Of a DNA stretch of 64,000 bases, positions 22,821 to 55,139 are shown one piece after another. Each line of letters opens with the position of its first letter. The stretch's first letter is position 1. The translations under genes were made by a program, and so were the position numbers. The notes under the pieces were generated by a model, which was not told the origin of the DNA, made no database searches, and worked only from the letters and a program-made list of their open reading frames with translations. Source of the DNA: Marsupella aquatica (Eukaryota > Plantae > Marchantiophyta); contig OZ316897.1 of assembly GCA_973895155.1 (NCBI GenBank), positions 14,817,375-14,881,374 on the forward strand. The letters run 5' to 3'.

Positions 22821-25365
22821 TACTAATCGGATGTAGTGACATTAATAACCTAGCTTCTGCGTGGCTGCCAGCGAAGATGCTGCAATTGGGACTACCGGAT
22901 GAATTGGCACCACCCGTCCCCCCCCCCCCCCCCCCCCTCAGAAGGAAGGGCAGACATGTCTGACTACCCGTTTAAATGTAGCCATTCTACAGTAGTTACT
23001 TCCTTCTTGTGCAGTGTACAATGTCATAAGAGGCATTGCTGATCCAAATATTTACTTTTTGACTCTTTTGGAAAAATCATTGTGGGACTTGCAAGTAAGC
23101 AGGTTCTCGCCAATGAATAGAAATTAAAATTGACCATATTTTCTTCTGTAATGGTAGTAACGCACCTTGGGAAAAGGATTTCTGCCAAAGAAGCAAAAAC
23201 TGATGGGGCCCAGGGTCCATCAAGCATATGCCTCGTAATGTCAAAGATAGTGTACCTAGTTACAACTACAGTATCTCCACATCCCAAGGTATTTGCTAGA
23301 TAGACCACCAAAATAATATATATGACTTGATGAGACCTCTGAGATTTTGGGCAAGTTGATTTAAGGTCTATCAACATTTGAGGTATATCAACTGTCCACA
23401 TCAGGTCCCTTGATGTAATATTTTTCATTTTGGTGGTCCATCAAATATACACCTCATTCCAGCTAAAACTTGGGAAGCCTTACCTGACTTAAAGCGCAGC
23501 GCATCATTGTCGAATTCTGTTTCCATGCATATAAAGACGGCGAAAAATCACTCTCCATCCAACCCAGCTTGACAGGACGATGCGTTCGTGAAGGAAAACC
23601 TGCTGTACAGTACGTGAGGGCTCTCATGTAAGTTGCTGTTCACACTAGACTAGGTTACTTACTTGATCACTCAATCCCTCGAGTGCCCTTGAGAAGAAGA
23701 AGGAATCAAATCAAATAGGCTGCGGCGGTGCGTTCGTTGACATTGGCCTCGTTCATCCTCCCCCGAAATCTATTTTTGGCCGCTCTCTTTCTCGTGGATC
23801 GAGCTCGCTGCTCCCTGTCTCCCTCCGTCTACCCCGTCTACTTTGTACAATCCACACTGATGACTGTAACAGACAACAATCCTGCACTGTAGAGCGTGAG
23901 CATCATTCTGAGCTAGCGACATGAAGAATGGTGACTGTGCCGAGAAATTCCTCGATCAAGCGCAGTCTATGAAACAGACGCCGCTGCCCTACTCTGTGTG
24001 TACTGTAAAAACTATTGCAGTTCCGCCAAAGTCAAATCAAGTCCGGCTTTTCTTCTGTTGCATCCAACTGCCCTCCACGATCTACGATGTATATGATACG
24101 CATTTGCAATCACTCACCGTACCTAGAACGCACTTTCTCGAGCTGGCTGGGATGCCTAGGTGACTCGAAGACTGGAGACAGTCATTATCAAAATGCTTCG
24201 CGTACAGTAAGTTAGAAAGAAGATCACAGCAAGTTAGTATAGTAGTATAGGTATGGTTCAATGCTAATCTTGTACTGTAATGCTACCGGTCCAGGACGAG
24301 ATGCTCCAATTTGCGGGATACACTTGTCCTGCATGGCTTTACCGATGCATGAAAGGGGCTTGTACTGCACCGAAGACACTGTTGTTATCTCCAATTACTC
24401 TATTGTTATCTAATAATTTGTCGCGCAAAACGATCTCAGTACGGGTGGCCGCCAATGTCACGAGCAGGCACTGTAGCTGATCATGACTCGGTACCGGAGA
24501 TAGTAGGGGTGGTGGAAAGTAGGACCCGGGGAGGACCTCGTGGGTGCTGTACAAAGGGTTTAACGAAGTACACATCTACGATAACAAACTCCACGGCAAG
24601 CAAAGGCTGGAGCGAGTAATTAGCTCGAGAAAGTCGAACCTTTTTCAAATGGAAAATAGGGTTGAGTAGGCTCATGACGTTTTCGGGGGAATAAAATGGT
24701 TGTAGGTAATGAGAAACTAAATTGAACCAATTACGGTCGTCTTGGTAACTGCACTCTGAGGTCAGTGACGTATCATGTCGATTAGAATCAAGATGACAGC
24801 GTGCAAGAAAGCATGTAAACCAATCTTGCCGTATTCGGCACGACGAAAGAATGATCTCTTTCATTCATGTACAGTAGATGTTTTTGCTAGTCCCGAAACA
24901 AATCAAACCTCTAGTATGACAGTGGAGAATGGGTCGAAAGTATGCTGAATTTAAACTTCGTGTCGAAAGAGCTGCTAACCAAGACAGAAGAAGATAAGTT
25001 TTGCAATTCAGGTATAATCAGATCCGTGACCAACGAGCGGTTCACAACCAAAAAAGTGAAGATACCTAGGGTGGCTTTACAAAAAGTGTGGCACTTGTGG
25101 GTTTGGAAACTGGTGGGCCATTACTGTTGGAAAGATAAACTCCACACCAAAAATCTTTGAAACTAAGTTGGATAATATCAAATCCCTTGAATGAAGCAAA
25201 CAAAGTTTGTAAATGTTTTCCTACCTCTGGAGGTGTTCTTATCTAGACATTGAGATTTAGAGTACTCCATGTCGTTGGCTACAACGTGTATACAAGTTGA
25301 CTCTTTAAGCAGTTACCAATTTGGGTGCTGAGTGCTTCTAAGCAGCAGTTTCTAGCGGCAAAACT

Positions 25366-41000: not shown

Positions 41001-41817
41001 GTTATTTGTGTTTGCTGGTTCTCACACTGATGCGTCGGGCTGAGCGGGCCGTCAGATTTGCTGATTTCCTTTGAAAGTCTTTTCTGGGTAAGTGGCATTC
41101 TTCTTACTTTTCACTCTTGCTCCTGCTTTAATTTTCCCATTCTCTCGGGTCTGAATATGTTTGGGCTCTGGGTGACTCTTGGTCCTTGACCACTTGTTGT
41201 CTGGCCGTTTCATTCCCTATTTTATTTGTTGGGTTTTACTGTCATCATAAGTAAAGTGCTTATTTCAAGGAGAAGAAAAAGAAACATCTAAAGGAACAAG
41301 AAAAATAACACCAAAAGGGTCAAACAGAGTACACCAAAGAGCAAACAAAAGAACTCCAAAAAGGACAAACACATAAGAAACAAATGTAACCCTGAAGAAA
41401 TAAATAGATGAATAAAAGAAATAGGGAACTACACTAGAGGGCCAGACTCCAGCGAGTACGTGTGCAGCAAGGACTTTTGCGTCCCAAGGACTTTACTCCG
41501 GGTGAACGACGGAAACATCCCAAGCCCGTTGTGCGTCGTGACGGTGCTCTGCCGTAAGAAACACTTCGTCTTTCATCGACCCACCGCTGGACGGTCACCG
41601 TTGTTGCTGATGTCACTACTAGCGACGGATTACACCGTACTGTACCGCGTTTGGCTACTGGGCAGCACCGTATAAGAGTACGGTGGTACTCCGGCTGCGA
41701 AACACCGACCGATTACGCAAAGGAATGATTCCGTCTCTGAAGTACGTTGTCCTCCCGGTTTGACCTTGCCCGTCAAACTGGGCGTTTGAGAGCGGCAAAT
41801 TGACAACCCGGCACCCG

Positions 41818-42360
41818 GGTTCGGAAGCAGTCCGGGAAAGGAAACGTCCGGTTCGGGGTTCGGGTTCGGGAGGAGGTTCGGGAGGAGGTTCGGGTGGGGG
41901 TCCGGGTGACTAATCGGGTCCGGGTCCGGGGCGGAGGCGCTCGGTGGGGGCTCGGGGTGGGGTCCGGGTGGGGTTCGGGTCCGCTCGGTGGGGGTTCGGG
42001 GTGGGGTCCGGGTGCGGCTCGGGTCCGGGAGGAGGAGGTGCGGGGGGTTCGGGTGGGGTTCCGGGTGGGGTTCGGGTCCGGGTCCGAGGGGTTCGGGTTC
42101 GGGAGGTACGGGGGGTTCGGCTGGGGTCCGGGCCCGGGGCGGAGGCGCTCGGTGGGGGTTCGGGGTGGGGTCCGGGTGGGGTTCGGGTCCGGGAGGCCGG
42201 GGTGGGTCCGGGTGGGGATCGGGGTTCGGGGTCCGGTTCGGGGTTCGGGGTTCGGGGTCCGGTTCGGGGTTTGGAAGTTCGGGGTTCGGGATTGAGGCTC
42301 GAAGAATTAGGGTTTCGCGATTTAGGGTTGGAGGATGGGGCCGGCCGGGAAAGGGTCGGG
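41818..42360 (+). repeat. Left subterminal G-rich repeat field (GGGTTC/GGGTCC hexamers, ending in TTAGGG-type units)
   Basis: Dozens of CGGG(G)TTC and CGGGTC units; ATTAGGGTTT and TTTAGGGTT at about 42306-42329. Confidence 0.9.
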
Positions 42361-42620
42361 GGCTCGGGAGAGGATAAAAGGAGGAGATCCCTCCTCTCCC
42401 TCCTCATTTTCGGTTTTGCAGAAAGGAGGAGAGGAGGAGAGGAGGAAGAGGAGGAGGACAGGAGAGGAGAGGAGGAGGAGGAGGAGGAGAGGAGGAGGTA
42501 AGTGTTTGGTTTTGGTTTTTATTTTTGATTTTTGGTTTGTTTTTATTTGTTTGTGTTTTTTTTTGTGATTTTTTAATTTTTTTTTGTGTTTTAAACCTTA
42601 ACCTTAGAGCCAAATGGAGG

Positions 42621-43002
42621 GATATAAAGAAACACTTGTACGCGCACGCTTTGAGCCTCGGTTCGGTTTGCGATACTCCGTACAAGAATTTCTTAATATC
42701 ACCTTAACAATTTAGTCTCCTTTGTTCATTAAGTAAAACATTTGCGGAGATAGAGGAATCCATGTACGCATGCTTAGAGTTTCGGCTCGGTCTGCGATAC
42801 TTTGCATGGATACCACGATTCGCCGAGAATGTTTTTACTTGAAATACAAATGAGTGTTAAGTTATAGACACCAAATCACATATGTCGAAGCAGGAATATA
42901 ACAACTTTGAAAGAAAAGAACACTTTTGTGCGCATGCTTTGAGCGTCCACTCGGTCTGCGATATTTCACAAGTGTTGTCTTTCTCTTTTATTGTTGTTAT
43001 AT
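42621..43002 (+). ncRNA. Three conserved bulged stem-loops (L1 42621-42700, L2 42731-42840, L3 42896-43002) in the kinase leader, probably inside an intron
   Basis: The apical module CGCAYGCTTWGAG-N-(C/T)TCGGTYTGCG plus a 6-nt 3' bulge sits on three different lower stems. It lies between donor GAG|GTAAGT (42498) and acceptor TTTTCAG (43099). Confidence 0.7.
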
Positions 43003-43190
43003 AGAAAGGTAATTAAAATCATGTGTGCAATAAAAATACATAATGCATGGGAGAAATAAACCGGGAAAAGATAATAACAATACGACTTGTAATTTTCAGG
43101 TTGGTCGTTGAATCCTTATTGGAAGGATTTTATTTAAATCCCGGTAAGATCTTGTTCCTCCCTCACATATTCCTTTTGTGAAGGGAAAAC

Positions 43191-44846
43191 ATGGTCATCG
43201 AAAATTTTAGTTTAGAGTATAGGCAAGTGTTGGAGATGATCACAAAACATGTGAATGAGGGATATGAGCCGAATCTTGTTGCTCTGGATGCATTGAAGAA
43301 TGCTCGAAACACTCTCGAACATGCTAGGAATTCTAGCAAAGTGGCCGGGAAACGAAAACGGAAGGGGGCAAACGAAGAGGCAAAACAAGTTCGACACAAT
43401 GTGGTAGTGTCGATATGGAAAGAGATACTTTATCGCTACACTCAACCGAAACAGTATGGGGTGGACGGGTTCGAGAGGGAGTTCACAAGACACGGAGAGA
43501 AAGGATACAAGAACTTTCTTGGTGAGATAACCCGTTGTATGCGGGAAAGTGTACAAAAGGAGGACAATTTCACACGAGAGCAAATGAAGTCATTTGAAGA
43601 TGAAACTGAGAAACCGGGAGGATTTCTGGAAAATTTGGCACTCAACTTGGAGAAGCATGTTTGGGATAATTTGGCAGCCAAAGTGGAAGAGGGTGACACT
43701 ACATTGCTTGGAAACCCCGGGATGTACACACACAAGAGAGAATTGCTAGTGAAGTGGAGTAAGGAGTTGGCAATCGCAAAATCTGATAGCAATGTCAAAT
43801 ATGCTAACGAGATTGTGCACTTTGGGGATGTCAGCATCAAAAGTGCTCGAAAAGGAACACGTCCATCGCGTGTAGTTCCAGAGGTTAGGAGTATCCATTT
43901 TCTTAAACCTGAGCAGGTGCACAACACACGTCGCATTGGGAAAGGAATCCAAGGAGAGGTATACACTTGTCGTATATTACATTGTCCTCTCATTCCCGTC
44001 AATGTGACCTTAGTCGCAAAGCGGTTCAAGGATGGAGACAAGCATAAGAGACGAACTGACGCATTACAAGAAGTGCTTATGGGAGGACTGAATCATAAGG
44101 GAATCGTTGGAGCTCTTGCGTTGACTATTGAGGATCCGCCAAAACTTATTTACGATCACTATAATGGAGGTGACTTGGGTAGCTTTATTGATAAGTGCGG
44201 CATATCGTCAAAGAGCAAGGGGAAGGCACAGATCACGACGGACCTTGATTTCAAGTTTATTTCGGAGAAGAAACTCTTGTTGGAGAACCGGTTGGGAATC
44301 GCCTTGGCTTTGCTGGAGACACTGCAATACTTGCATGAGCATGATCGATTTCATTGTGATCTTCACTTTGGAAACATCCTTCTTCATTTCGATCACGAGC
44401 ACGATGTGGCTATTAAGGTGTATGTTGGTTTATGTGATTTTGGCTTGTCTAAGCATAAATCACAGTGCAAATTACCAGCTAATCGGATGTGGCCCACAGC
44501 AACAGAAAAAGCAGCAACATACCAAAAACAATTTCCACAGTTGGCTCCGGAGCTTGTTCAACCTACCCCTGTCGAGTTTAGTGAAAGTACCGATATATAT
44601 GCTTTGGGGAATATTTTTGAGACATTGTTGACAGAGAATTGGGATGGAATGTCTAAGGGTTCACGGTTTTTGGGGAGGGGTTGGAGTGCACAAGTGCATG
44701 GCCCCAAATTGGATATCATAATCCGTGAAATGATGGCCACGGATGCCAAGAAAAGAATGGATTGTGCTTTTTGGAGTTTGAAGATAGTTCGAACGTTTCC
44801 AGATTGCACATTGCATTTGCACAACAGTCCATATCTTAGAGATTAG
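43191..44846 (+). CDS. Transposon-borne protein kinase (551 aa) with an uncharacterised ~240-aa N-terminal region containing an NLS-like KRKRK
   Basis: All catalytic subdomains are present: IGKGIQGEVY, VAKRFK, alphaC Glu (LQEV), HCDLHFGN, DFG, APE and DIYALG. The ORF is intronless and uninterrupted. Confidence 0.9.
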   Translation: MVIENFSLEYRQVLEMITKHVNEGYEPNLVALDALKNARNTLEHARNSSKVAGKRKRKGANEEAKQVRHNVVVSIWKEILYRYTQPKQYGVDGFEREFTRHGEKGYKNFLGEITRCMRESVQKEDNFTREQMKSFEDETEKPGGFLENLALNLEKHVWDNLAAKVEEGDTTLLGNPGMYTHKRELLVKWSKELAIAKSDSNVKYANEIVHFGDVSIKSARKGTRPSRVVPEVRSIHFLKPEQVHNTRRIGKGIQGEVYTCRILHCPLIPVNVTLVAKRFKDGDKHKRRTDALQEVLMGGLNHKGIVGALALTIEDPPKLIYDHYNGGDLGSFIDKCGISSKSKGKAQITTDLDFKFISEKKLLLENRLGIALALLETLQYLHEHDRFHCDLHFGNILLHFDHEHDVAIKVYVGLCDFGLSKHKSQCKLPANRMWPTATEKAATYQKQFPQLAPELVQPTPVEFSESTDIYALGNIFETLLTENWDGMSKGSRFLGRGWSAQVHGPKLDIIIREMMATDAKKRMDCAFWSLKIVRTFPDCTLHLHNSPYLRD

Positions 44847-45033
44847 AGATTAGGGTTTACACAATTTTGTAAAGGTCACCTTAACGATTATATGTTTATT
44901 CATTGTATGTCAATTACAATGTTCTGCATTTTGTTGATAATATTCTATCAAACTTTGTCATGAATGCCCAAAATTGTGCTAAATGTGTTTGTACATTGTC
45001 AAATATCGCAGACCTTTTGTACACATCGCAAAC

Positions 45034-46980
45034 ATGGGACGATGGGAATTGTCTTCTGATGATGAAGACAAAGAGTTCACGACACAACATCTTACCATGC
45101 AAGATGGTCAAGGATCCTATTGTGACGATGAAGCTCTTCGTAATAATGTGTTGGATAATCTTACAACCATTGGCATTCACTATGAGGCTAAACCCAAGGT
45201 TGATGGAACACCGGCGCCAAACACAAGAAGATGGGAAGATGAGGGTATGAAGGATGAATGGAGTATATTAACGCCCAATGTAAATCCTCCCCATGACGAA
45301 TGGGCCATGAATGCAAAGGAATTGGAGATGTTGATGCCAAAGAAAGACTTTTGGCCATGAGCACAACAAGTTTTTCACGATCCGGATCTTTGGGCAACAA
45401 GATCATGGGCGCAAGAAAAATTCACCATGTCCAAAGTAACACATGCAGGTGTTAAATCACATTGGCAGCAACGATATCGAGAGTTTGCTCCACACAAAGC
45501 CCAAACGAAAATGAGTTCCGTTTACCCTCCTTTTATCCGATGTCTGATTGCTGAATTCATTCTCAAGTGGAAGGTGGATTACCGTTGGGAAAACAGTGCT
45601 GGCAAGCTGACTCATCAGGTGCATCCATCAGTGGTTGCGATTGCAACGAATAGGAATACAACTATTGCAAAGGACCCTTCAATGGAGACTTCCAACAAGG
45701 GATCCAAAAGAAAGCTAGATGACACTGGGGAGGGATATGCGCATGAGAAGGGGAAAGCGGCTGTACTTCCTCGAGTCTCCATGCCTGACCGTGCAGCACC
45801 ACCAACCAATGTGGAGTCAACGCACACCAAAAAACCAATCCTTGTAGGTGTTGGGAGTAGAACTCCACATGCAAAGAACAACAATGTTACTGATGCTAAC
45901 AAGGATAAGTTCAACCTGCACAACATATGCAAGAGCTTGGGGGCAGATGTTGCAGAGGTGATTGAGACAAATCTCCGCACGAAGTATGTAGTGGAGCTAT
46001 GTGAATGTGGCAGCATCGAAAAGTTCAAGTCACAATTGCAACAAGCTGATATAAAGATGAGATCACTTGAGAAGAAGCAGAACGAGCCGACGACCAATTC
46101 GGAAGTGATGTTGTACAAGTGTCAATTGTTTGACAAGATGGAAGAAATCAATAAGCTGACAAAACAACTTGCTGAAAAAGAGCGTCAATGCAATGAACTG
46201 GCACGACTTGAGGAGAAGGACAAGATCATTAATGATCTTAAAAGTGAACTTGCAACGCAAGCAATCATCATATCAAATCTTCACGAAGAGGTGCAAGAAT
46301 TTAACAATGGTGCTTTGGGGATGAGGTCAAACAAAGGGCAAGGTGAATTATCGCGGCCAAATTTTGTTAACATGCAAATCATAGATCCTACAGGGCACAG
46401 CAACCTTTTTCCAGATGTGGAGGTTGACGCGGAAGGTATTGATAGGTTTTTTGATAAGTGGAAAAAGAATGAAACTATGGCAGCATTTGTTCGTGAAAAG
46501 GATGACAAGTGTACTTGGTGCCTATATCCTTGGGGCCCTGAATCTGTTTCCATGTTGGGAACCTGCGGTCATATATGGCATCATGCTTGCTTGTCTAAAT
46601 GGTTGAAGAAAAGCCGAAAATGTTGGTGTCGCACACCATTTCATGAACGCGAGTATGAGCAACGAGGATTGTTGAAGCAAATGCCATCAATGGAGACTCA
46701 ACAAAACACTGAAGATATGACTGAAGATACTATACCGGCGATGCAAATAGATGAAACTCCCATTGAATATTTCACAATCAATGAATATAATTTGTCAGAT
46801 GGGGAATTTGACAGGTTGTTATTCAGTGGTCGACTCGATGAGTGGAAACAATATGCGGCAGCCAACCAGCCATCAATAGATGAGCAAAATTTGCAACGAT
46901 CCATTCGGCGCCATCGACGACGTCAACAACAGGCAGAGGTGAAAACAGAAGCTGTTGACAATAACAACAAAAGGAACTAA
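45034..46980 (+). pseudogene. Transposon-borne coiled-coil + RING-H2 (E3 ligase-like) gene, 648 codons with one in-frame TGA at 45358-45360; the downstream ORF 45427-46980 is intact
   Basis: ORFs 44983-45360 and 45427-46980 are in the same frame and read through (...KDFWP*AQQVFHDPDLWATRSWAQEKFTMSK...). RING-like CTWC-x14-CGH-x2-H-x2-C-x10-CWC. Heptad-rich segment KMEEINKLTKQLAEKERQCNELARLEEKDKIINDLKSEL. Confidence 0.8.
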
Positions 46981-47287
46981 AACCAATAGTCTCTACATTT
47001 TGATGTTATTTTCATGTAGTTACTATTAGAGACATTTTGTTAAAATAGAAGCGGCATATCCTCTTTGACAATTATTTTCAACTTGTAATTGGTAAAGAGA
47101 TTTTGGAGTGACATTACATTGCATATCTCGATGAGTACATATATTTTTCATTGGGGGCATGGCGTCGCCTTTTGGAGAATGTGTATTTTCGTAAGAATAT
47201 TCCATCCTCCAATCAGCCATAGGTTTTGGAAGCATATTGTCGGGCTCACAATCATATTTTTGGACAAGTATGAGGAAAATAGACGTG

Positions 47288-48820
47288 ATGAGAGACGGTA
47301 GCACAGTGGACTCAGGTACTGATCCTTCTCTGAAATCATTTCCAAAAGGAGATCGTGTAGCACAATGAGTTCAACAAAGTCAACATCGCAATGGTTTTAG
47401 CCGCCCAAGTTGAGAATGATTTTGTAGAAGGATGTATACCTAAGTCCACTCACTTTTCCTGTCTTTCATAATTTTTTCCGCTATTGCTGCTACGGCCAAT
47501 GACATTCATGCACATGCGAACCGAGGCCAACGCCTACTCCTTTGCCCACCGCAAAAATGGGCCCTCATTACAACTTGAAGTTGAACGGAGTGTATTTGAG
47601 TACGAGAGAAGTTCTGAAAGCAAATGCACTCTCAGGTCAAATTTTCAGGGTCCTTCGAGCAAAAAATTACTGAGTATGTCATCGATCCGTTGGTTTCACA
47701 ACTTCTCTCGTACTCAAATAAACTCTGTTCAACTTCAAGTAGCGTAGCTGCTACGACCAATGACATTCATGCGCATGCAAACCGAGGCCAACGCCTCTAC
47801 ATTTGCCTACCCCAAAAATGGGCCCTGATTAGAACTTGAAGTTGAACAGAGTTTTTTTCATTATGAGAAGGTTTATTCAAGCAATGGCACTCTCAGGTCA
47901 ATATTTCAGGTCCTCCTGACTTTGTTATTATTGAATATGTTCGTGCTCCGTTGCTTGAATAAATCTTCTGATAATGAAATGAACTGACCAATTACTGGAG
48001 TACGGCTACTACGGCCTATGACATTAATTCGCACAATTGCATGTTTATATCCTCTCCTTTCCGAATTCCAATTCGAGCTTGGACATCCTCTCGTCAGCTG
48101 ATCTCCACCATTGCAGTTGCTCTTCACGCAAACCAAGATAGCAGTCTCTAGAATCCTCGAACCTATTTTATTTCAATGCATCATTCATAGTGTTTGAGGA
48201 ATCCAGAGGTTCGCGTGAGGAGCAACTGAAAGGGTGGAGACCTGCTGACGAGAGGGTGTCCAAGCTCGAATTGGAATTCGGACAGGAGAGGATATAAACG
48301 GGTGAACTTTGACTTGAAATTGGTGATTGTATTTTGCGTCTGCATATCAATTTGGTGACCGATCTTGCGGAATCCCCGTGACCGTGTCTGATCATCATCA
48401 TGACATTGCTCTCCTTGGCCACCAATGGGCCCTCATTACAACTTCAAGTTGAACGGGGTTTATATGATTATGAGAAGGTTACTGATTATGTAGGCGATGT
48501 GTTCATTTCACAACTTCTCTCATAGTCATATAAACTCTGCCCAACTTCAAGTAGTGCAGCTGCTACGGTCAACGACATTCACCCACCCCAAAAATGGGCC
48601 CTCATTACAACTTCAAGTTCAACTAAGTTTATTTTATTACGAGAAGGTTTATTCAAGCAATGACATTCTCAGGTCCAATAATGAGGTCCTCTCGACCTCA
48701 TTATTATTGAATATGACGGTGCTCTATTGCTGGACTAAATCTTCGCATAGTGAAATGAACTAACCAATTAATGGAGGGGGCTAGTATGGACTACGGCTGC
48801 TATGGCCAACAACAAGGTAC
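47288..48820 (+). ncRNA. Cluster of six long fold-back hairpins joined by conserved linkers (putative polycistronic miRNA/siRNA precursor)
   Basis: Hairpins at 47288-47469, 47573-47740, 47850-47985, 48043-48299, 48441-48552 and 48626-48761, each with 35-90 bp stems. Compensatory substitutions occur between paralogous hairpins, and G:U pairs favour the + strand. Confidence 0.75.
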
Positions 48821-49048
48821 TTTGAAATAGTCAGTGTTGGAGATTTGGAAAACATGTTGCGTTGGTGTGTCTCTATGGCATTCTCAAATGCAAATACAAA
48901 TAAATTATTCAATCATTGTACAATAATAAACACACTGCAAGACAATACAATCATGTTACAAAAAATATAATTGTTTATAATTTTGTCTATGTCAGATACG
49001 ACAATATAAGAGTAGCAACACTTGATATTATCCTAATGAAAAGATGCT

Positions 49049-51954
49049 TCAAGGCTGTGAAGAGAAATTTCGTGCATTGTTGTTAAGATTTTTGCACAAA
49101 AGCGCATTCCACTCGTCTTGTTTGTCACCCCAACTGAGTGGATCACGATTGTGTGACTGAACATTGTGCGATGTTTCTTGAAATGATGATATTCCTCGAA
49201 ACCCACCAAGGCCAATAGGCCTGTTCGACGTATATGGATTCATGACACTTGGCCCTGCATACGCATTCAAGGGTGGACCTGCATGGTGTTGCCAGTTTGC
49301 ATGTGGGTCGTTTGAAGTTTGACCTTCATGATTGTTGTATCCATGAAAAAAGGTTGATGTCCTTCCATTCGTCGGATGCCCTACTGTGCCTGTGCGTTGC
49401 TCGTTGAAATATGGTCTGCTTGTGTCAACATCATTCGCAAAGTTCGACCAAGGTGACCTTGGTTGGGAAGGCATCACAAAGTTTCTGTCCAGTGATGCAT
49501 CTTCCTCGTCTTGGATTTGCGATTCATCAATTGTAGGATACATCTCCAAATCCATTTCATTCTCCCATTCCTCTGCAGCAGTGATGTCTGTATCTGGTGG
49601 AATACGAGTCAAGAACTCACTATCCTTATCCAGTGAAAATCCGTGTAGCAATTCATCAGCATCATCAATTGTATCATAATCTTCGACATCTTCTTCACCA
49701 AGAGCCGCACGTGTTGCATCGTACTCTTCATTGCTGCACAACTCCATGGAGATAGGTCTAGGTCCATCATTTGTTCTTCTTCTTTGGTCATAACGTTCAT
49801 ATATAAACGTATGCGGGTTTCGAACATTTGTGAGCCCTTTCTCTACCCTCATGTTTGTAAATACAAACACCAAATCTTTTGCTCGATCATTTGTCAATCG
49901 ATTGCGACTTTTGGAATGTATAAATCCATACGAACTCCAGTTTCGCTCGCAAGCTGATGCGCACACTTTTTGGTGTAAGATTCTTCGCGCCAGGATTCTC
50001 AAATGTTTATAATCTGCACCATACGCATGCCACCACTCTGCTGGACTGACATTACCTATACTTGATTGGGCGGCTCCCATCGCTATTGATGTGTTGGGAT
50101 TTTTTTTTGGGCGTCAATGGCTTGACTGTGGATGGCAGAAATAAGTTCTTTGACGTCGCGATCATGGTTGATCCCCTCCTTCACCTGTTGTTCTGAATAT
50201 CTAGCAATGTATTCACTGAAACCCCTGTAGAGTTCTGGATCTCCAGCGACATCTATGTCCTCATCAAAAAACATTTGGGGATTGAGATATGCTGCCGCTA
50301 GCATGAAATCAGTGGTAAGAGATTTTTTTCGATCCAAATACACTTTTAGTATCTTCGGTTTCAATACCTCTGTTACCAATGGACAATCCTCCATGCTTGC
50401 TTTCAAAACATCAATCCCTCTTTTCAAACTCCAATACAACCAACCTGATTGCGGAGAATCACCATCAAATTCTCGCAACATCTTGACCAACGGAGTAAAG
50501 AATTTAACTGTATCCTTCACTTCAACCCAAAATGTATCTTGCTGTATCCACATTTTAAGTTCGTCTGCCTTTCCCCTCGTCATGTGTCCAGCTGATTTTG
50601 GTCGCAATGGAAGTCTATCACGATAAGACTGCCAATTATCATCAATGACCATCTGTTGTAAAGCTCCTCTTAGCTCCAACGCTCTTTGTGCCATTAGGAA
50701 ATTGGTCGCAAATCTAGTTGCATTTGGATTCAACAGTTTTTTGTCAGGAGATATTCTTGCAAATATTGCAGAAAGCTTTTGCGATGATGAAACTGCTTTT
50801 ACTATCCACCTCAACCGTTTAAAAATCTTTTGGAATGGATTCTGTCCAACATCATCTACCACTACACGCTTGTGACCACACATATCCTCTAGCAGCAAAT
50901 TAAACACGTGGGCAGCACACCAGCTCCAAGTGACATGAGGATACTTTTTCATGACTACCTCACAACCTGCTACGCGATTTGCGGGTGCTCCATCAGTTAC
51001 AATTTGAATAATATGATCTGCACCAATATCCTCAATGTATTTCAACCACATGTCGCCAAGATATTTCCCATCTTTCTTGTCAGCTTGCGCAGCATTCCAA
51101 CTATCCAAGAAGAAGTCACCTTTAGAAGTCAACAACATGACATTCATCAAAGGTTCTCTTCGGACGTTTTCCCATCCATCTGAAGAAAGAGAATACCCAT
51201 AAGGTTTTGCCTCCTTTAAAGTTTGCGTCATGTCCTTTGTGAGATCCTCCTTACTGTCTTCCAATAATTTCAATCGCAAACTTCGCATCGTAGGTAGAGA
51301 ATAACCATTGATAATCCCTTTTGAAGTCTCTATGACTGCTTCTCGAAAAAAAGGATTATTTGAAACATTGAATGGAATACCACTGGTGTAGAAAGCTTTC
51401 GCCCAAAGCTTATCCAAATTTGTTCTATTTGGAATTTGATAGGCATCCATAATTGGGTTAGGAAGATTTACTGGCCTATCTCCTTCCCTTACATGTGTAT
51501 CATCCATGTCAACATAGTTTGACCCTCGTGTGGATGCTTGCGAATATGAACTTCCAACGCTTGGCCTACGACCTCTCACATCCCGCAAGATATGACTTCC
51601 ATCTCGTCGTTTGTACTTTAAGGTCGGTGGAACCTTTATCACATTGTACATAATGTTGATGGCATCCAAATCGACGACACCATAGAGTTGCATGCAAGGG
51701 GGCGCATCCCCTTTTTGGATGTTTCCCATCAAATGCGCCTTTGCTCGTGTTGCATGATGAGTAACGTATGTTAAACAATACTTGCATCTTCGATAGATAC
51801 GATTGACATCATGACATGTTGAAGGCGCATCACATCGTTCAAAATATCTCCACACTGGAGATTGTTTTGAAGGGTGTTCTTGCACACGAGTTGGACCAGG
51901 CCTGGGAGTAGTGGAATGATATCCAGTTTCATGCGAATCCTCTTCATCAGACAT
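49049..51954 (-). CDS. hAT transposase (BED zinc finger, DUF659/RNase H-like DDE core, hATC dimerisation domain, long acidic tail), about 968 aa if the frameshift at the A9 run (50100-50108) is corrected
   Basis: SPVWRYF..CKYC..HATRAKAHL (BED), LSSDGWEN and IVTDGA (catalytic Asp residues), WSWCAAH (CxxH), TRFATNF, PAEWWHAYG, SACERNWS (catalytic Glu), HSKSRNRL. The likely start is MSDEED at 51954. The two ORFs join with a one-base shift. Confidence 0.92.
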
Positions 51955-52014
51955 TGTTACGACTCTCAATGGTAAAAAAATAAAAGGGTTGATTCTTTTG
52001 ATTTTGTGAATATA

Positions 52015-52393
52015 ACAAATATAGTACAATGGGTTACTTTCCTGAATTATCGCAGACTGGGCCTAAGCTCAAAGCATGCGCAGGAAAGTTTCCCAAATTC
52101 TTATATTTGTCAACATCCCTACTTCAACCTATGTTATGTAATATCTATAACTTCACAATAGTTTATCTTTGAAGTGAACATATGTACGAGAAATCGTGAT
52201 ACCCATATGAAATGTCATAGACCGAGCCAAAGCTCTAAGCATATGCACATGGGTATCTCTTTACTCGCAAGTAGTTCACTTTCAAACAAAACAATGATGC
52301 AAAGTTGTTAAGGCGATATAAGGAACTTCTCGTACGAATTATCGCAGACCGAGCCGAGCTCAAAGCATGCGCGTACAAGAGTTCCAATGTATC
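52015..52393 (-). ncRNA. Three conserved bulged stem-loops (R3 52015-52110, R2 52172-52281, R1 52315-52393) in the transposase leader, an inverted homologue of 42621-43002
   Basis: The minus strand has the same apical module and 6-nt bulge. R2 carries the compensatory change CGCA/TGCG to CATA/TATG. Confidence 0.7.
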
Positions 52394-52530
52394 CCTCCGA
52401 TCTCTCCCTAATGCTAAACCACAAGAGAGAGAAACACAATGAGACTTTGGATTAGTGAAATGAATTAGTTATTCCTACTTATACTAAATCATCTACTTCT
52501 TATCCTCTCTTAAAACTCTTAATCTTTGAT

Positions 52531-53160
52531 CCTAACCCTAATTGCGCCTCCCTTAACCCTAATCTCGCGCCCCTAACCCTAATCCCGCCTCTAACTCTTC
52601 CCCGGCCACCAATTCCCGAGCCCCGTCCCCGAACCCCGCACCCCGTTCCCCGAACCCCGCACCCCGTTCCCCGAACCCCGTTCCCCGCATCCCCGAACCC
52701 CCTACCCGAACCCCCTTCCCCGAACCCCCTACCTCGTTCCCCGAACCCCGTTCCCCGAACCCCGTTCCCCAAATCCCCGAATCCCGGCCCCCCTTTCCCG
52801 CCCCCCCTTCCCCGGTTCCCCGAATCCTCTTCCCCGAATGCCCCCCGTCCCCGGTTCCCCGAATCCCGTCCCCCGGGCCACCTTTACCCCGGCCGGCCCC
52901 GGAAGGGTCCGGGCAGGGTTCGGGTGGGGGTCCGGGGAGGGTTCGGGTGGGGGTCCGGGGAGGGTCCGGGAAAGGCCCGAGAGTCCGGGGAGTGTTCGGG
53001 GGAGGGTCCGGCGAGGTTCCGGGAAAGGCCCGGGAGGGTCCGGGGAGGGTCCGGGAAGGGCCCGGGAGTCCGGGTTCGGGTCAGGGGGAGTTCGGGTTCA
53101 GGTCCGGGGTGCTCGGGAGGTGTTCGCGAAAGGTCCGGGGAAGTCGGGGTTCGTTCGGGA
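52531..53160. repeat. Right subterminal repeat field: CCCTAA units, a C-rich block (to about 52880), then a G-rich block (about 52901-53160)
   Basis: CCCTAACCCTAAT units at 52531-52585. CCCGAACCCC repeats switch to GGGTCCGGG repeats at CCCCGGCCGGCCCC (52887-52900). Confidence 0.9.
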
Positions 53161-55139
53161 GAATCTTCAGGAATATACGTCAAATTGCGTGTTTTCGGGC
53201 CGTCATTTGACGATTTGACGTGCCCGACAAGGCGTCAAGGTGCCCGTCAGATTAAACCGGGGTTGTCCTGCAAAATGCGGAGTACAGGTACTGTATGGAA
53301 GTCCAGTACGATGCAATACGACTACTAGAGTAAAAAGTAGTAAAAGGACTGTAATGCTGTACAATCGTCTGTGGTGACTGTGTAATGACTGTCTGACTGA
53401 CTCTCGGCGCTTCGAGCAGCTTCACGGAAGTAATGGAGAGGCAAGTTGGGTCTCTTTGGTGAGCTTAAGAGTGACGAAGGAATTAGTCACAGCATTGAGA
53501 AGGGCCATATTATTGCTTACGCAGTGACGGGATTGATTGTGATAATGGCGAAGTTTGGGTACTGTGATAGGGCACTGGAGAGTTTGGGAGTTTGGGGCCT
53601 GGGGGTATATACTTTAGAGTACAGTACAATGAAGCTGTCGCTTACGGTACACAGTATCTAGACCTCGAGGAGTGATGACGAGTACGGTAGAGTGGCGTAC
53701 AATACTGACTCTGTGACTCACTGACTGACCAAGCAGGTTGAGTCACTTGGGTGGCAAAGGCAAAGGGAGAATTAGTTTATTGGTACTTTTGGAAACAGAG
53801 AATTAGTTTTTTTATTTACGAAGTGATACCTGTAGTCACAGTAAGAAGAAGGTCACATTATTAGGCTCCATGCTGAGAAAAGGAATCACTGTAGTTACAG
53901 TATGATCGAAGAAGCTTACATTATTACAGCATGGTGATGATTATGGCAAAGTTCGGTAATATAGCTAAAGAATTTGCTAACGGAGGTTATTGCGAAACAG
54001 TAGTTTTTGTGGACGGTGGAGTTCGAGAAATTCTTTTCAGTACAGTGATGTTGTGTGTATTCCATGCGAGGCCAATTATTGCAATTGGGAGTCTACTGTG
54101 GACTTGTGGAGGTACAGTCTAACGAAGGTTTCCATTTTACAGTACCGTATCTCTGAATTGGCGATGATGAGGCAATAGGAGGGTACTAGCGTATTGTTGT
54201 TATTAATTACGCAGTATTGAGCGTGGTAAGAAACGTAATCTATGCGGAGAGGGAATCGATGCGAAGGAAATGAGATTAGGGTGGGTTGGGATTTGGGAAC
54301 TTTGGATGGGTTGAATACGTCCAGAGAGGAAGACCTACTGGGTGCAGGAGAAGGCTAGAAGTGCTAGAGTGCGCCGAGCTAAGGGAAAGCTATGGAAGCT
54401 ATGGAAGAGGAGGAGCAATGTATGGGAAGCTGGAGAAGCTACGGTGTAGCAGCAGCAGCAGGCCGTAGAAGAAAGGGGAAGGATGGGAATTGGAAAAGCG
54501 AGGCTGAGGACGGTCAGAGAGCGTTGCTAGTGTTGCTGTTGCTGTTGGTGCGCTGCTGCGTATTGGAAGGGTCGTGTCCAGCGTACCGTAGAGTCTACAA
54601 CTTACTGAAGTAGAAGGTGGTGGTGGGCTGCTGCACTTTCTTTCAGGCAGCGGCGCAGGCAGGAGGAAGCAGCCACGGGCTGCTGCATCAGGTTGAAGGA
54701 AGGAGGAACTTCGGGATTTGTGCACAAAGCTCTGGTTGGAAGAGAAAAATATGTGGCAGCGGCAGATGCGGTGTGGGGCAAGGTTCTTTCTGCGCACATA
54801 GAAGCGAAATGCTGCAGCAGTGCTACTAAGGACGCGAGATCATCAGACGCAGCAGTGAATCTGCTCTACCTCAAACACTCCTGAAGAAGATTTCACATTG
54901 CAACAGTAGGCAGTTTTGTAGAGAGCCAGTTTCGTAAAAAATTACGGTAACGTTGGCAATTTCCGAAAAAGAGGAGGTGATCCAGAAAGGAAAGGTTGGG
55001 TAGTCTGACAATACAGTAGCCTACGGTAGTCAGTCAGGAGGATTCTGAGAGGAAGGGCACGAAAGGGAAGTGAAGGGAAGGGAAGGGAAGGGAAGGGATC
55101 TGGAGGGAGCAGCGTAGTCTTTGCGGTTATCGTGAAGCA

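Follow-up and report, generated by a model that had tools for sequence, protein, structure and literature searches.

An array of six fold-backs lies in the spacer between two genes of a hAT transposon in the 64-kb window, by which we mean the whole stretch of DNA analysed here, and this array is a real, unusual transposon module. We give about an even chance to the reading that it is a tandem inverted-repeat module renewed by arm-to-arm copying of DNA in a young hAT element, and that it would yield hairpin siRNAs if transcribed. Under this reading, one unit consisting of a linker, a GGGCCC box and a fold-back would have been duplicated in tandem to give types A and B, and a second duplication would have produced the pairs HP1/HP2 and HP4/HP5, with HP0 and HP3 as separate fold-backs. 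Self-complementarity would be kept or regained mainly in DNA, by reverse-complement copying of one arm onto the other through template switching or gene conversion within the inverted repeats. Such copying may accompany gap repair in cut-and-paste transposition, and the arms would afterwards decay roughly neutrally. Read-through or a local promoter may transcribe the spacer, and Dicer-like enzymes could then cut the 38-92-bp stems into heterogeneous hairpin siRNAs. Since these siRNAs would match only the element's own copies, their likeliest effect would be to trigger or tune self-silencing, and not to act as guides against host genes.

The linker-hairpin array and its carrier element

The carrier was assigned to the hAT elements by its 8-bp target-site duplication (TSD), its short terminal inverted repeats (TIRs) and a transposase with a C-terminal dimerisation domain (Table 1). 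The TIRs, CCCGGTTTGACC and CCCGGTTTAATC, match at 10 of 12 positions, and the TSD, GTTGTCCT, is perfect over its eight positions at 41746-41753 and 53262-53269. The transposase contains DUF659 (E=2e-30) and PF05699 (E=5e-11) domains; the split between its two ORFs, at 50078-50085 on the - strand, is either a frameshift or a short intron. Upstream of the array lies a RING ORF, whose best named homologue comes from the liverwort Calypogeia fissa (53% identity), and a kinase ORF is located further upstream. Subterminal repeat arrays of the GGGGTTCGGGG type, in inverted orientation, were found near both ends of the element (42067-42290 and 52615-52781), and longer inverted repeats are located internally at 42616-42968 and 52043-52398. 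The RING and transposase genes are convergent, and the array sits in the spacer between their tails, about 300 nt downstream of the RING stop and about 230 nt from the transposase stop. AT-rich sequence follows both gene tails before the array starts, suggesting that the array is placed outside both likely poly(A) regions.

Six fold-backs, HP0 to HP5, each spanning 126-271 nt, were located on the + strand within 47288-48790, an interval that contains no coding sequence. Their places agree with those given in a first-pass annotation of this DNA, and each of them folds far better than its shuffled versions, with minimum free energy (MFE) z-scores on the + strand of -5.0 to -18.1 against 30 mononucleotide shuffles. 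The arms that the annotation had assigned to HP1, with 47 of 51 positions paired, and the arms of about 90 bp that it had assigned to HP3 were both recovered, with the lengths and complementarities listed in Table 1. The whole window has seven close inverted repeats of at least 30 nt, and five of them fall in the 1.5 kb of the array. Outside the hAT element, the only other sizeable close fold-back is at 23287-23454, with 52-nt arms that are 73% complementary and 64 nt apart.

Table 1 Features of the array and of the hAT element that carries it, in window positions.
Feature	Positions	Strand	Description
hAT transposon, 11.5 kb	41754-53261		TIRs, TSD, transposase domains
RING-H2 cargo ORF	45427-46980	+	zf-RING_2 at 27.2 bits, marginally below the Pfam cut-off of 27.3
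HP0	47288-47470	+	-61.7 kcal/mol on +, -67.1 on -; sequence unrelated to the other hairpins
Linker 1 (68 nt) and GGGCCC box (47556-47570)	47486-47572	+	Motif match
HP1, type A	47573-47740	+	51-nt arms 47573-47623 and 47690-47740, 47/51 paired, 92%
Linker 2 and GGGCCC box (47817-47831)	47747-47833	+	Motif match
HP2, type B	47834-47985	+	38-nt arms 47850-47887 and 47948-47985, 87%
HP2 5' lower-stem relic	47834-47849	+	Without 3' partner
Linker 3, first 28 nt only, ahead of HP3	48005-48032	+	Motif match
HP3	48043-48299	+	92-nt arms 48043-48134 and 48208-48299, 91%; distinct sequence family
Linker 4, shortened, and GGGCCC box (48424-48438)	48400-48438	+	Motif match
HP4, type A minus apical 56 nt	48438-48555	+	38-nt arms 48438-48475 and 48518-48555, 82%
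Linker 5, shortened, and GGGCCC box (48593-48607)	48559-48607	+	Motif match
HP5, type B	48610-48760	+	38-nt core arms 48626-48663 and 48723-48760; perfect 12-bp apical stem
Last linker copy, truncated	48796-48809	+	13 of first 14 nt match; 6 mismatches over 22
Transposase, two ORFs in different frames	49049-52029	-	DUF659 part 50083-52029; hAT dimerisation part 49049-50080

The repeated parts between the hairpins are of two kinds. A 22-nt linker sequence occurs four times with 0-3 mismatches (at 47486, 47747, 48005 and 48559) and 0 times in shuffles; the annotation had placed a linker after five hairpins, and four of these copies stand, while the fifth, at 48796, turned out to be truncated (13/14). 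The box AATGGGCCCTSATTA is present exactly four times (47556, 47817, 48424 and 48593), each time directly before a hairpin, as had been claimed, and the window has no further copy of it. The linker is 68 nt long in units 1 and 2 and shorter in units 4 and 5, and CCAAT is present in two of the linkers. One unit, made up of linker, GGGCCC box and fold-back, is present in four paralogous versions, HP1, HP2, HP4 and HP5, and their flanks in common indicate that the units arose by tandem duplication. The claim of a modular linker-hairpin array inside a transposon is thus upheld, both by the shared units and by the hAT structure with its TSD. Tandem Repeats Finder made no call on the array, because the units are too diverged and contain indels. 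In the same interval, an ORF scan returned nothing above 92 aa, and a tRNA scan returned no tRNA.

Across units, conservation is 81-100% for the linkers and the GGGCCC box. When type A is compared with type B, the scaffold is conserved at 86-94% and the upper stems at 62%. Type B retains the 5' lower-stem sequence with its 3' partner replaced (columns 9-15 of the paralog alignment), so that the lower stem cannot form there and the conservation of the 5' side is not due to pairing. The invariant box contains TGGGCC/GGGCCC and appears to resemble the plant 'site II' or TCP-binding promoter motif; each unit might have a separate promoter, instead of belonging to a polycistron.

Matched changes on the two arms of the stems

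The pairing scheme of HP1 was imposed on an alignment of HP1, HP2, HP4 and HP5, that is, of four paralogs in one copy of the element. Both-side changes affected nine pairs, compared with 3.9±1.4 in shuffles and 1-3 in slid controls, and shuffles as extreme as the observed covariation numbered 1/500 or 0/500. Covariation among the four paralogs exceeds chance and is statistically real, and the matched changes on both arms of HP1 and HP4 described in the annotation are real as well. This covariation collapses to about four substitution events and one 2-nt indel on both arms. The substitutions are UA>AU in HP4, GC>CG or UG between types A and B, and UR>GC and UA>CG in HP1, and the indel, a GA present or absent on both arms, is the source of the 'changes' seen in columns 43-52. 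Of the four substitution events, three (UA>AU, GC>CG and UR>GC) are double transversions without a wobble intermediate.

The relationships among the arms cut across the hairpins. The 5' arm of HP1 shares 92% identity with the reverse complement of its own 3' arm and 83% with that of HP4, but only 73-75% with the other 5' arms, and is thereby nearer to the 3'-arm lineage. HP4 is chimeric, its 5' arm grouping with the 5' arms of HP2 and HP5 (79-81%) and its 3' arm with HP1 (89%). In HP5, the apex forms a perfect 12-bp stem, in which the changes relative to HP2 are clustered and lie on both sides. The first-pass annotation had taken the covariation as the product of selection on RNA structure. 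The excess over chance holds; since the events are few and mostly double transversions, and the arms are copied, the covariation is no proof of RNA selection. Judged from the four paralogs, the both-side changes look more like arm-to-arm copying of DNA, by template switching or conversion, than like RNA selection. Template switching creates and repairs hairpins with multibase 'compensatory' changes (PMC8794818).

Multibase 'compensatory' changes and mirrored indels that arise in a single DNA event are features which the array has in common with published template-switch mutations and hairpins (Mönttinen & Löytynoja 2022, PMC8794818; de novo miRNAs, PMC10710096), and they fit HP1, the apex of HP5 and the indel between types A and B. 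Whereas those studies reconstruct events on phylogenies, the events in the array are inferred from four paralogs in one copy. Even if the array is non-functional, template switching inside a transposon can produce hairpins that resemble miRNA precursors, and its ability to mimic RNA covariation is a caution for structure-based screens.

HP2 and HP5 form the cleanest paralog pair. They differ by 11 one-sided changes in 38 pairs and by no two-sided change, and 7 of the 11 break pairs, a divergence that appears to be about what neutral decay would give. Changes amount to 11/76 (14%) in the stems and 33/128 (26%) in loop and linkers (p=0.08); this slower change of the stems, together with the conserved linker and box, may be a hint of constraint.

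The strongest alternative is the one put forward by the annotation, namely that the array is a transposon-encoded polycistronic small-RNA cluster. A + strand transcript would contain several precursors with a constant scaffold and diversified stems, and each would be diced into a guide of its own against host or transposon genes. We consider this possible but doubtful. Covariation above both shuffles and slid controls is in its favour, as is a scaffold that differs less between types A and B than the upper stems do (86-94% versus 62% conserved). Against it, a cause at the level of DNA is the simpler account of the covariation, the divergence of HP2 and HP5 is one-sided and mostly pair-breaking, and type B is without the lower stem.

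Folding, small-RNA searches and known systems

Over the whole array, the folding energy was -592.5 kcal/mol on the + strand and -575.0 kcal/mol on the - strand, a weak strand bias that fits the arm-copying reading. HP2, HP4 and HP5 fold better on the + strand by 7-14 kcal/mol, as a polycistronic + strand transcript would lead one to expect, whereas HP1 and HP3 are strand-neutral and HP0 favours the - strand. Counted over all arms on the + strand, G:U and A:C appositions stand at 25:15 (p=0.15); G:U is in the lead in each hairpin but HP1 (1:1), and the excess is not significant, which detracts from the polycistronic reading. For HP2 and HP5, where the annotation had noted an excess of G:U, its direction was confirmed (8:2 in the cores), but two of the G:U pairs are common by descent, and once this shared ancestry is allowed for, the remaining 6:2 independent pairs are not significant (p=0.29). 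The gain in + strand folding of HP2, HP4 and HP5, the lead of G:U, the slower change of the HP2 and HP5 stems and the conserved linker and box are the observations that speak against the arm-copying reading.

At gathering scores, Rfam returned no family in the whole window, which counts against a polycistron of miRNAs, and by the same search none of the fold-backs belongs to a described miRNA family. The best Rfam match at the E-value level (47000-49100) was MIR7533 on the minus strand of HP3, which scored 83 bits, where the gathering score is 230; identification of HP3 as MIR7533 was rejected, the match being one of a generic long hairpin far below the gathering score. Readings as a snoRNA cluster or as a tRNA-linked array were likewise rejected, given the lack of box motifs and of tRNAs and the far too long stems. 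BLAST of the array against the remaining window found no target or source sequence, and the arms match no gene of the element. A scan of the window for 21-mers with up to 3 mismatches gave one match (48438 versus 57022), compared with 0-2 in shuffles, indicating that the window holds no target or source sequence. This agrees with the annotation, which had seen no target inside the window, and it weakens the polycistronic reading. A 27-nt degenerate motif common to the four units gave 0 matches in a metagenome scan and 0 in viral contigs, and a metagenome scan with the transposase C-terminal ORF gave 81 pattern matches, 0 of them confirmed.

The fold criterion for MIRNA genes, reportedly laid down by Axtell and Meyers in 2018, is a fold-back of no more than 300 nt with a duplex of 20-24 nt that has at most five mismatches, at most three of them in asymmetric bulges. 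The array offers single fold-backs of at most 300 nt, with 4 mismatches over the 51 pairs of HP1 and 91% complementarity over 92 positions of HP3. Their ability to host duplexes with few mismatches is compatible with a polycistron, although any long inverted repeat trivially offers as much. Very long near-perfect stems usually yield populations of siRNAs and not a single miRNA, a further point against the polycistron; the distinction between hp-siRNA and MIRNA loci is said to be that of Axtell in 2013 and of Axtell and Meyers in 2018. With 38-92 near-perfect pairs, the stems appear closer in geometry to hairpin-siRNA loci than to canonical MIRNA genes, and if the array is transcribed, hairpin siRNAs are a more likely product than miRNAs.

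To our knowledge, very few transposons produce regulatory small RNAs of their own, and miR820 is the textbook case. The miR820 genes reside in rice CACTA DNA transposons, and their target is a methyltransferase of the host, OsDRM2 (Nosaka et al. 2012, PMC3459959), which gives the polycistronic reading a precedent. The annotation's idea of guides against host silencing genes follows this model. Both systems have a hairpin-type precursor inside a class II DNA transposon. Each miR820 element, however, has a single hairpin; its expression and target are proven, and miRNA and target have co-evolved, whereas the array has six hairpins in a hAT element and is known from sequence alone. If expressed and processed, it would be a second case, richer than miR820, in a young hAT of an early-diverging land plant and beside cargo genes.

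In bryophytes, polycistronic loci account for about 25% of the miRNAs of P. patens, whereas only one such locus, with two hairpins, is known in M. polymorpha (PMC9291395). The array resembles such MIRNA clusters in that precursor-sized hairpins follow each other head to tail on one strand with short spacers. These clusters are host loci with sequenced mature miRNAs, whereas the array is transposon-borne, matches no family and has much longer stems. Hairpin-siRNA and proto-MIRNA loci arise from inverted duplications, and Mu killer in maize silences its own transposon family. The array is similar to these loci in its long near-perfect fold-backs (here 38-92 bp) and in that its small RNAs would match the element itself. 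Unlike a Mu killer-type locus, which is one large inverted copy of a coding region, it consists of small repeated fold-backs in a constant linker scaffold, and its arms match no gene of the element.

A more far-reaching proposal, which we think unlikely, combines copied arms with functional guides. A liverwort hAT family would carry, besides a kinase and a RING gene, a modular small-RNA cassette in which a constant scaffold holds exchangeable stems, renewed by template switching, so that the guides change. The scaffold of linker and GGGCCC box would have a role in processing or as a promoter, and host silencing genes, for example, would be the targets of the guides. Rice miR820 would then have a far older analogue with several guides.

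We regard as quite improbable a role of the array as a putative structure at the DNA or transcription level, for example as a barrier to convergent read-through that averts antisense dsRNA against the transposase. The position of the array exactly between the AT-rich 3' regions of the convergent genes would suit a barrier, and so would the near-equal folding of the two strands, which is expected for a function in either direction. However, a barrier leaves the repeated linker and GGGCCC box unexplained, and in plants it is poly(A) signals, and not hairpins, on which RNA polymerase II relies to terminate.

Copies and depth in public sequencing runs

Four public runs under two coded organism labels contain 77-86% of the sampled words of the window, and none of them is recorded as RNA. 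Contigs of runs X1, X2, X5 and X6 were aligned to 46400-49600. The depth of the exact sequence was uniform over the gene tail, the array and the opposite tail, at ~213-229 in X1 and ~401-433 in X2. This uniformity across tails and array indicates DNA and not RNA, and the high depth of the exact sequence, compared with 13-50 for diverged contigs, suggests that the element exists in this version in multiple copies. The hAT element is probably both young and multi-copy. In the multi-copy version, 47592 G>T restores a pair of HP1, raising it to 48/51 paired, and 48101 A>G restores a pair of HP3, indicating that the copy in the window carries private pair-breaking mutations. In runs X1-X6, hardly any difference separates the element under coded organism label A from that under label B over 46400-49600. 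In X2, contig depth over the RING-domain part at 46507-46720 is up to ~20 times that elsewhere in the element, and it is also high in X6; this excess indicates that the RING-domain part is common to many more copies or families than the array.

At 80% likeness or more, the depth over HP0, HP1, HP4 and HP5 was barely above that of the element itself, indicating that these hairpins are not dispersed as solo repeats, whereas 47898-48432, from the 3' arm of HP2 to the spacer behind HP3, was 2-4 times as deep as the remaining array in X2. It is highly improbable that the hairpins are nested MITEs or fold-back elements inserted singly, an option for which the annotation had looked to TSDs of their own: this deeper stretch and an 8-bp direct repeat, ATGACATT (48018-48025 and 48400-48407), which has the length of a hAT target duplication and brackets HP3 with the next 100 nt (48026-48399), are in its favour, but HP1, HP2, HP4 and HP5 were duplicated with their shared flanks included and lack target-site duplications of their own, solo copies are missing by run depth, and, as ATGACATT is part of the linker consensus and the block 48026-48399 does not end in inverted repeats, a nested insertion is only weakly possible even for HP3. 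At low depth, the element was also found in samples labelled C and D, and in D the sequence of HP1 is ~95% alike, with 7 differences over 151 nt.
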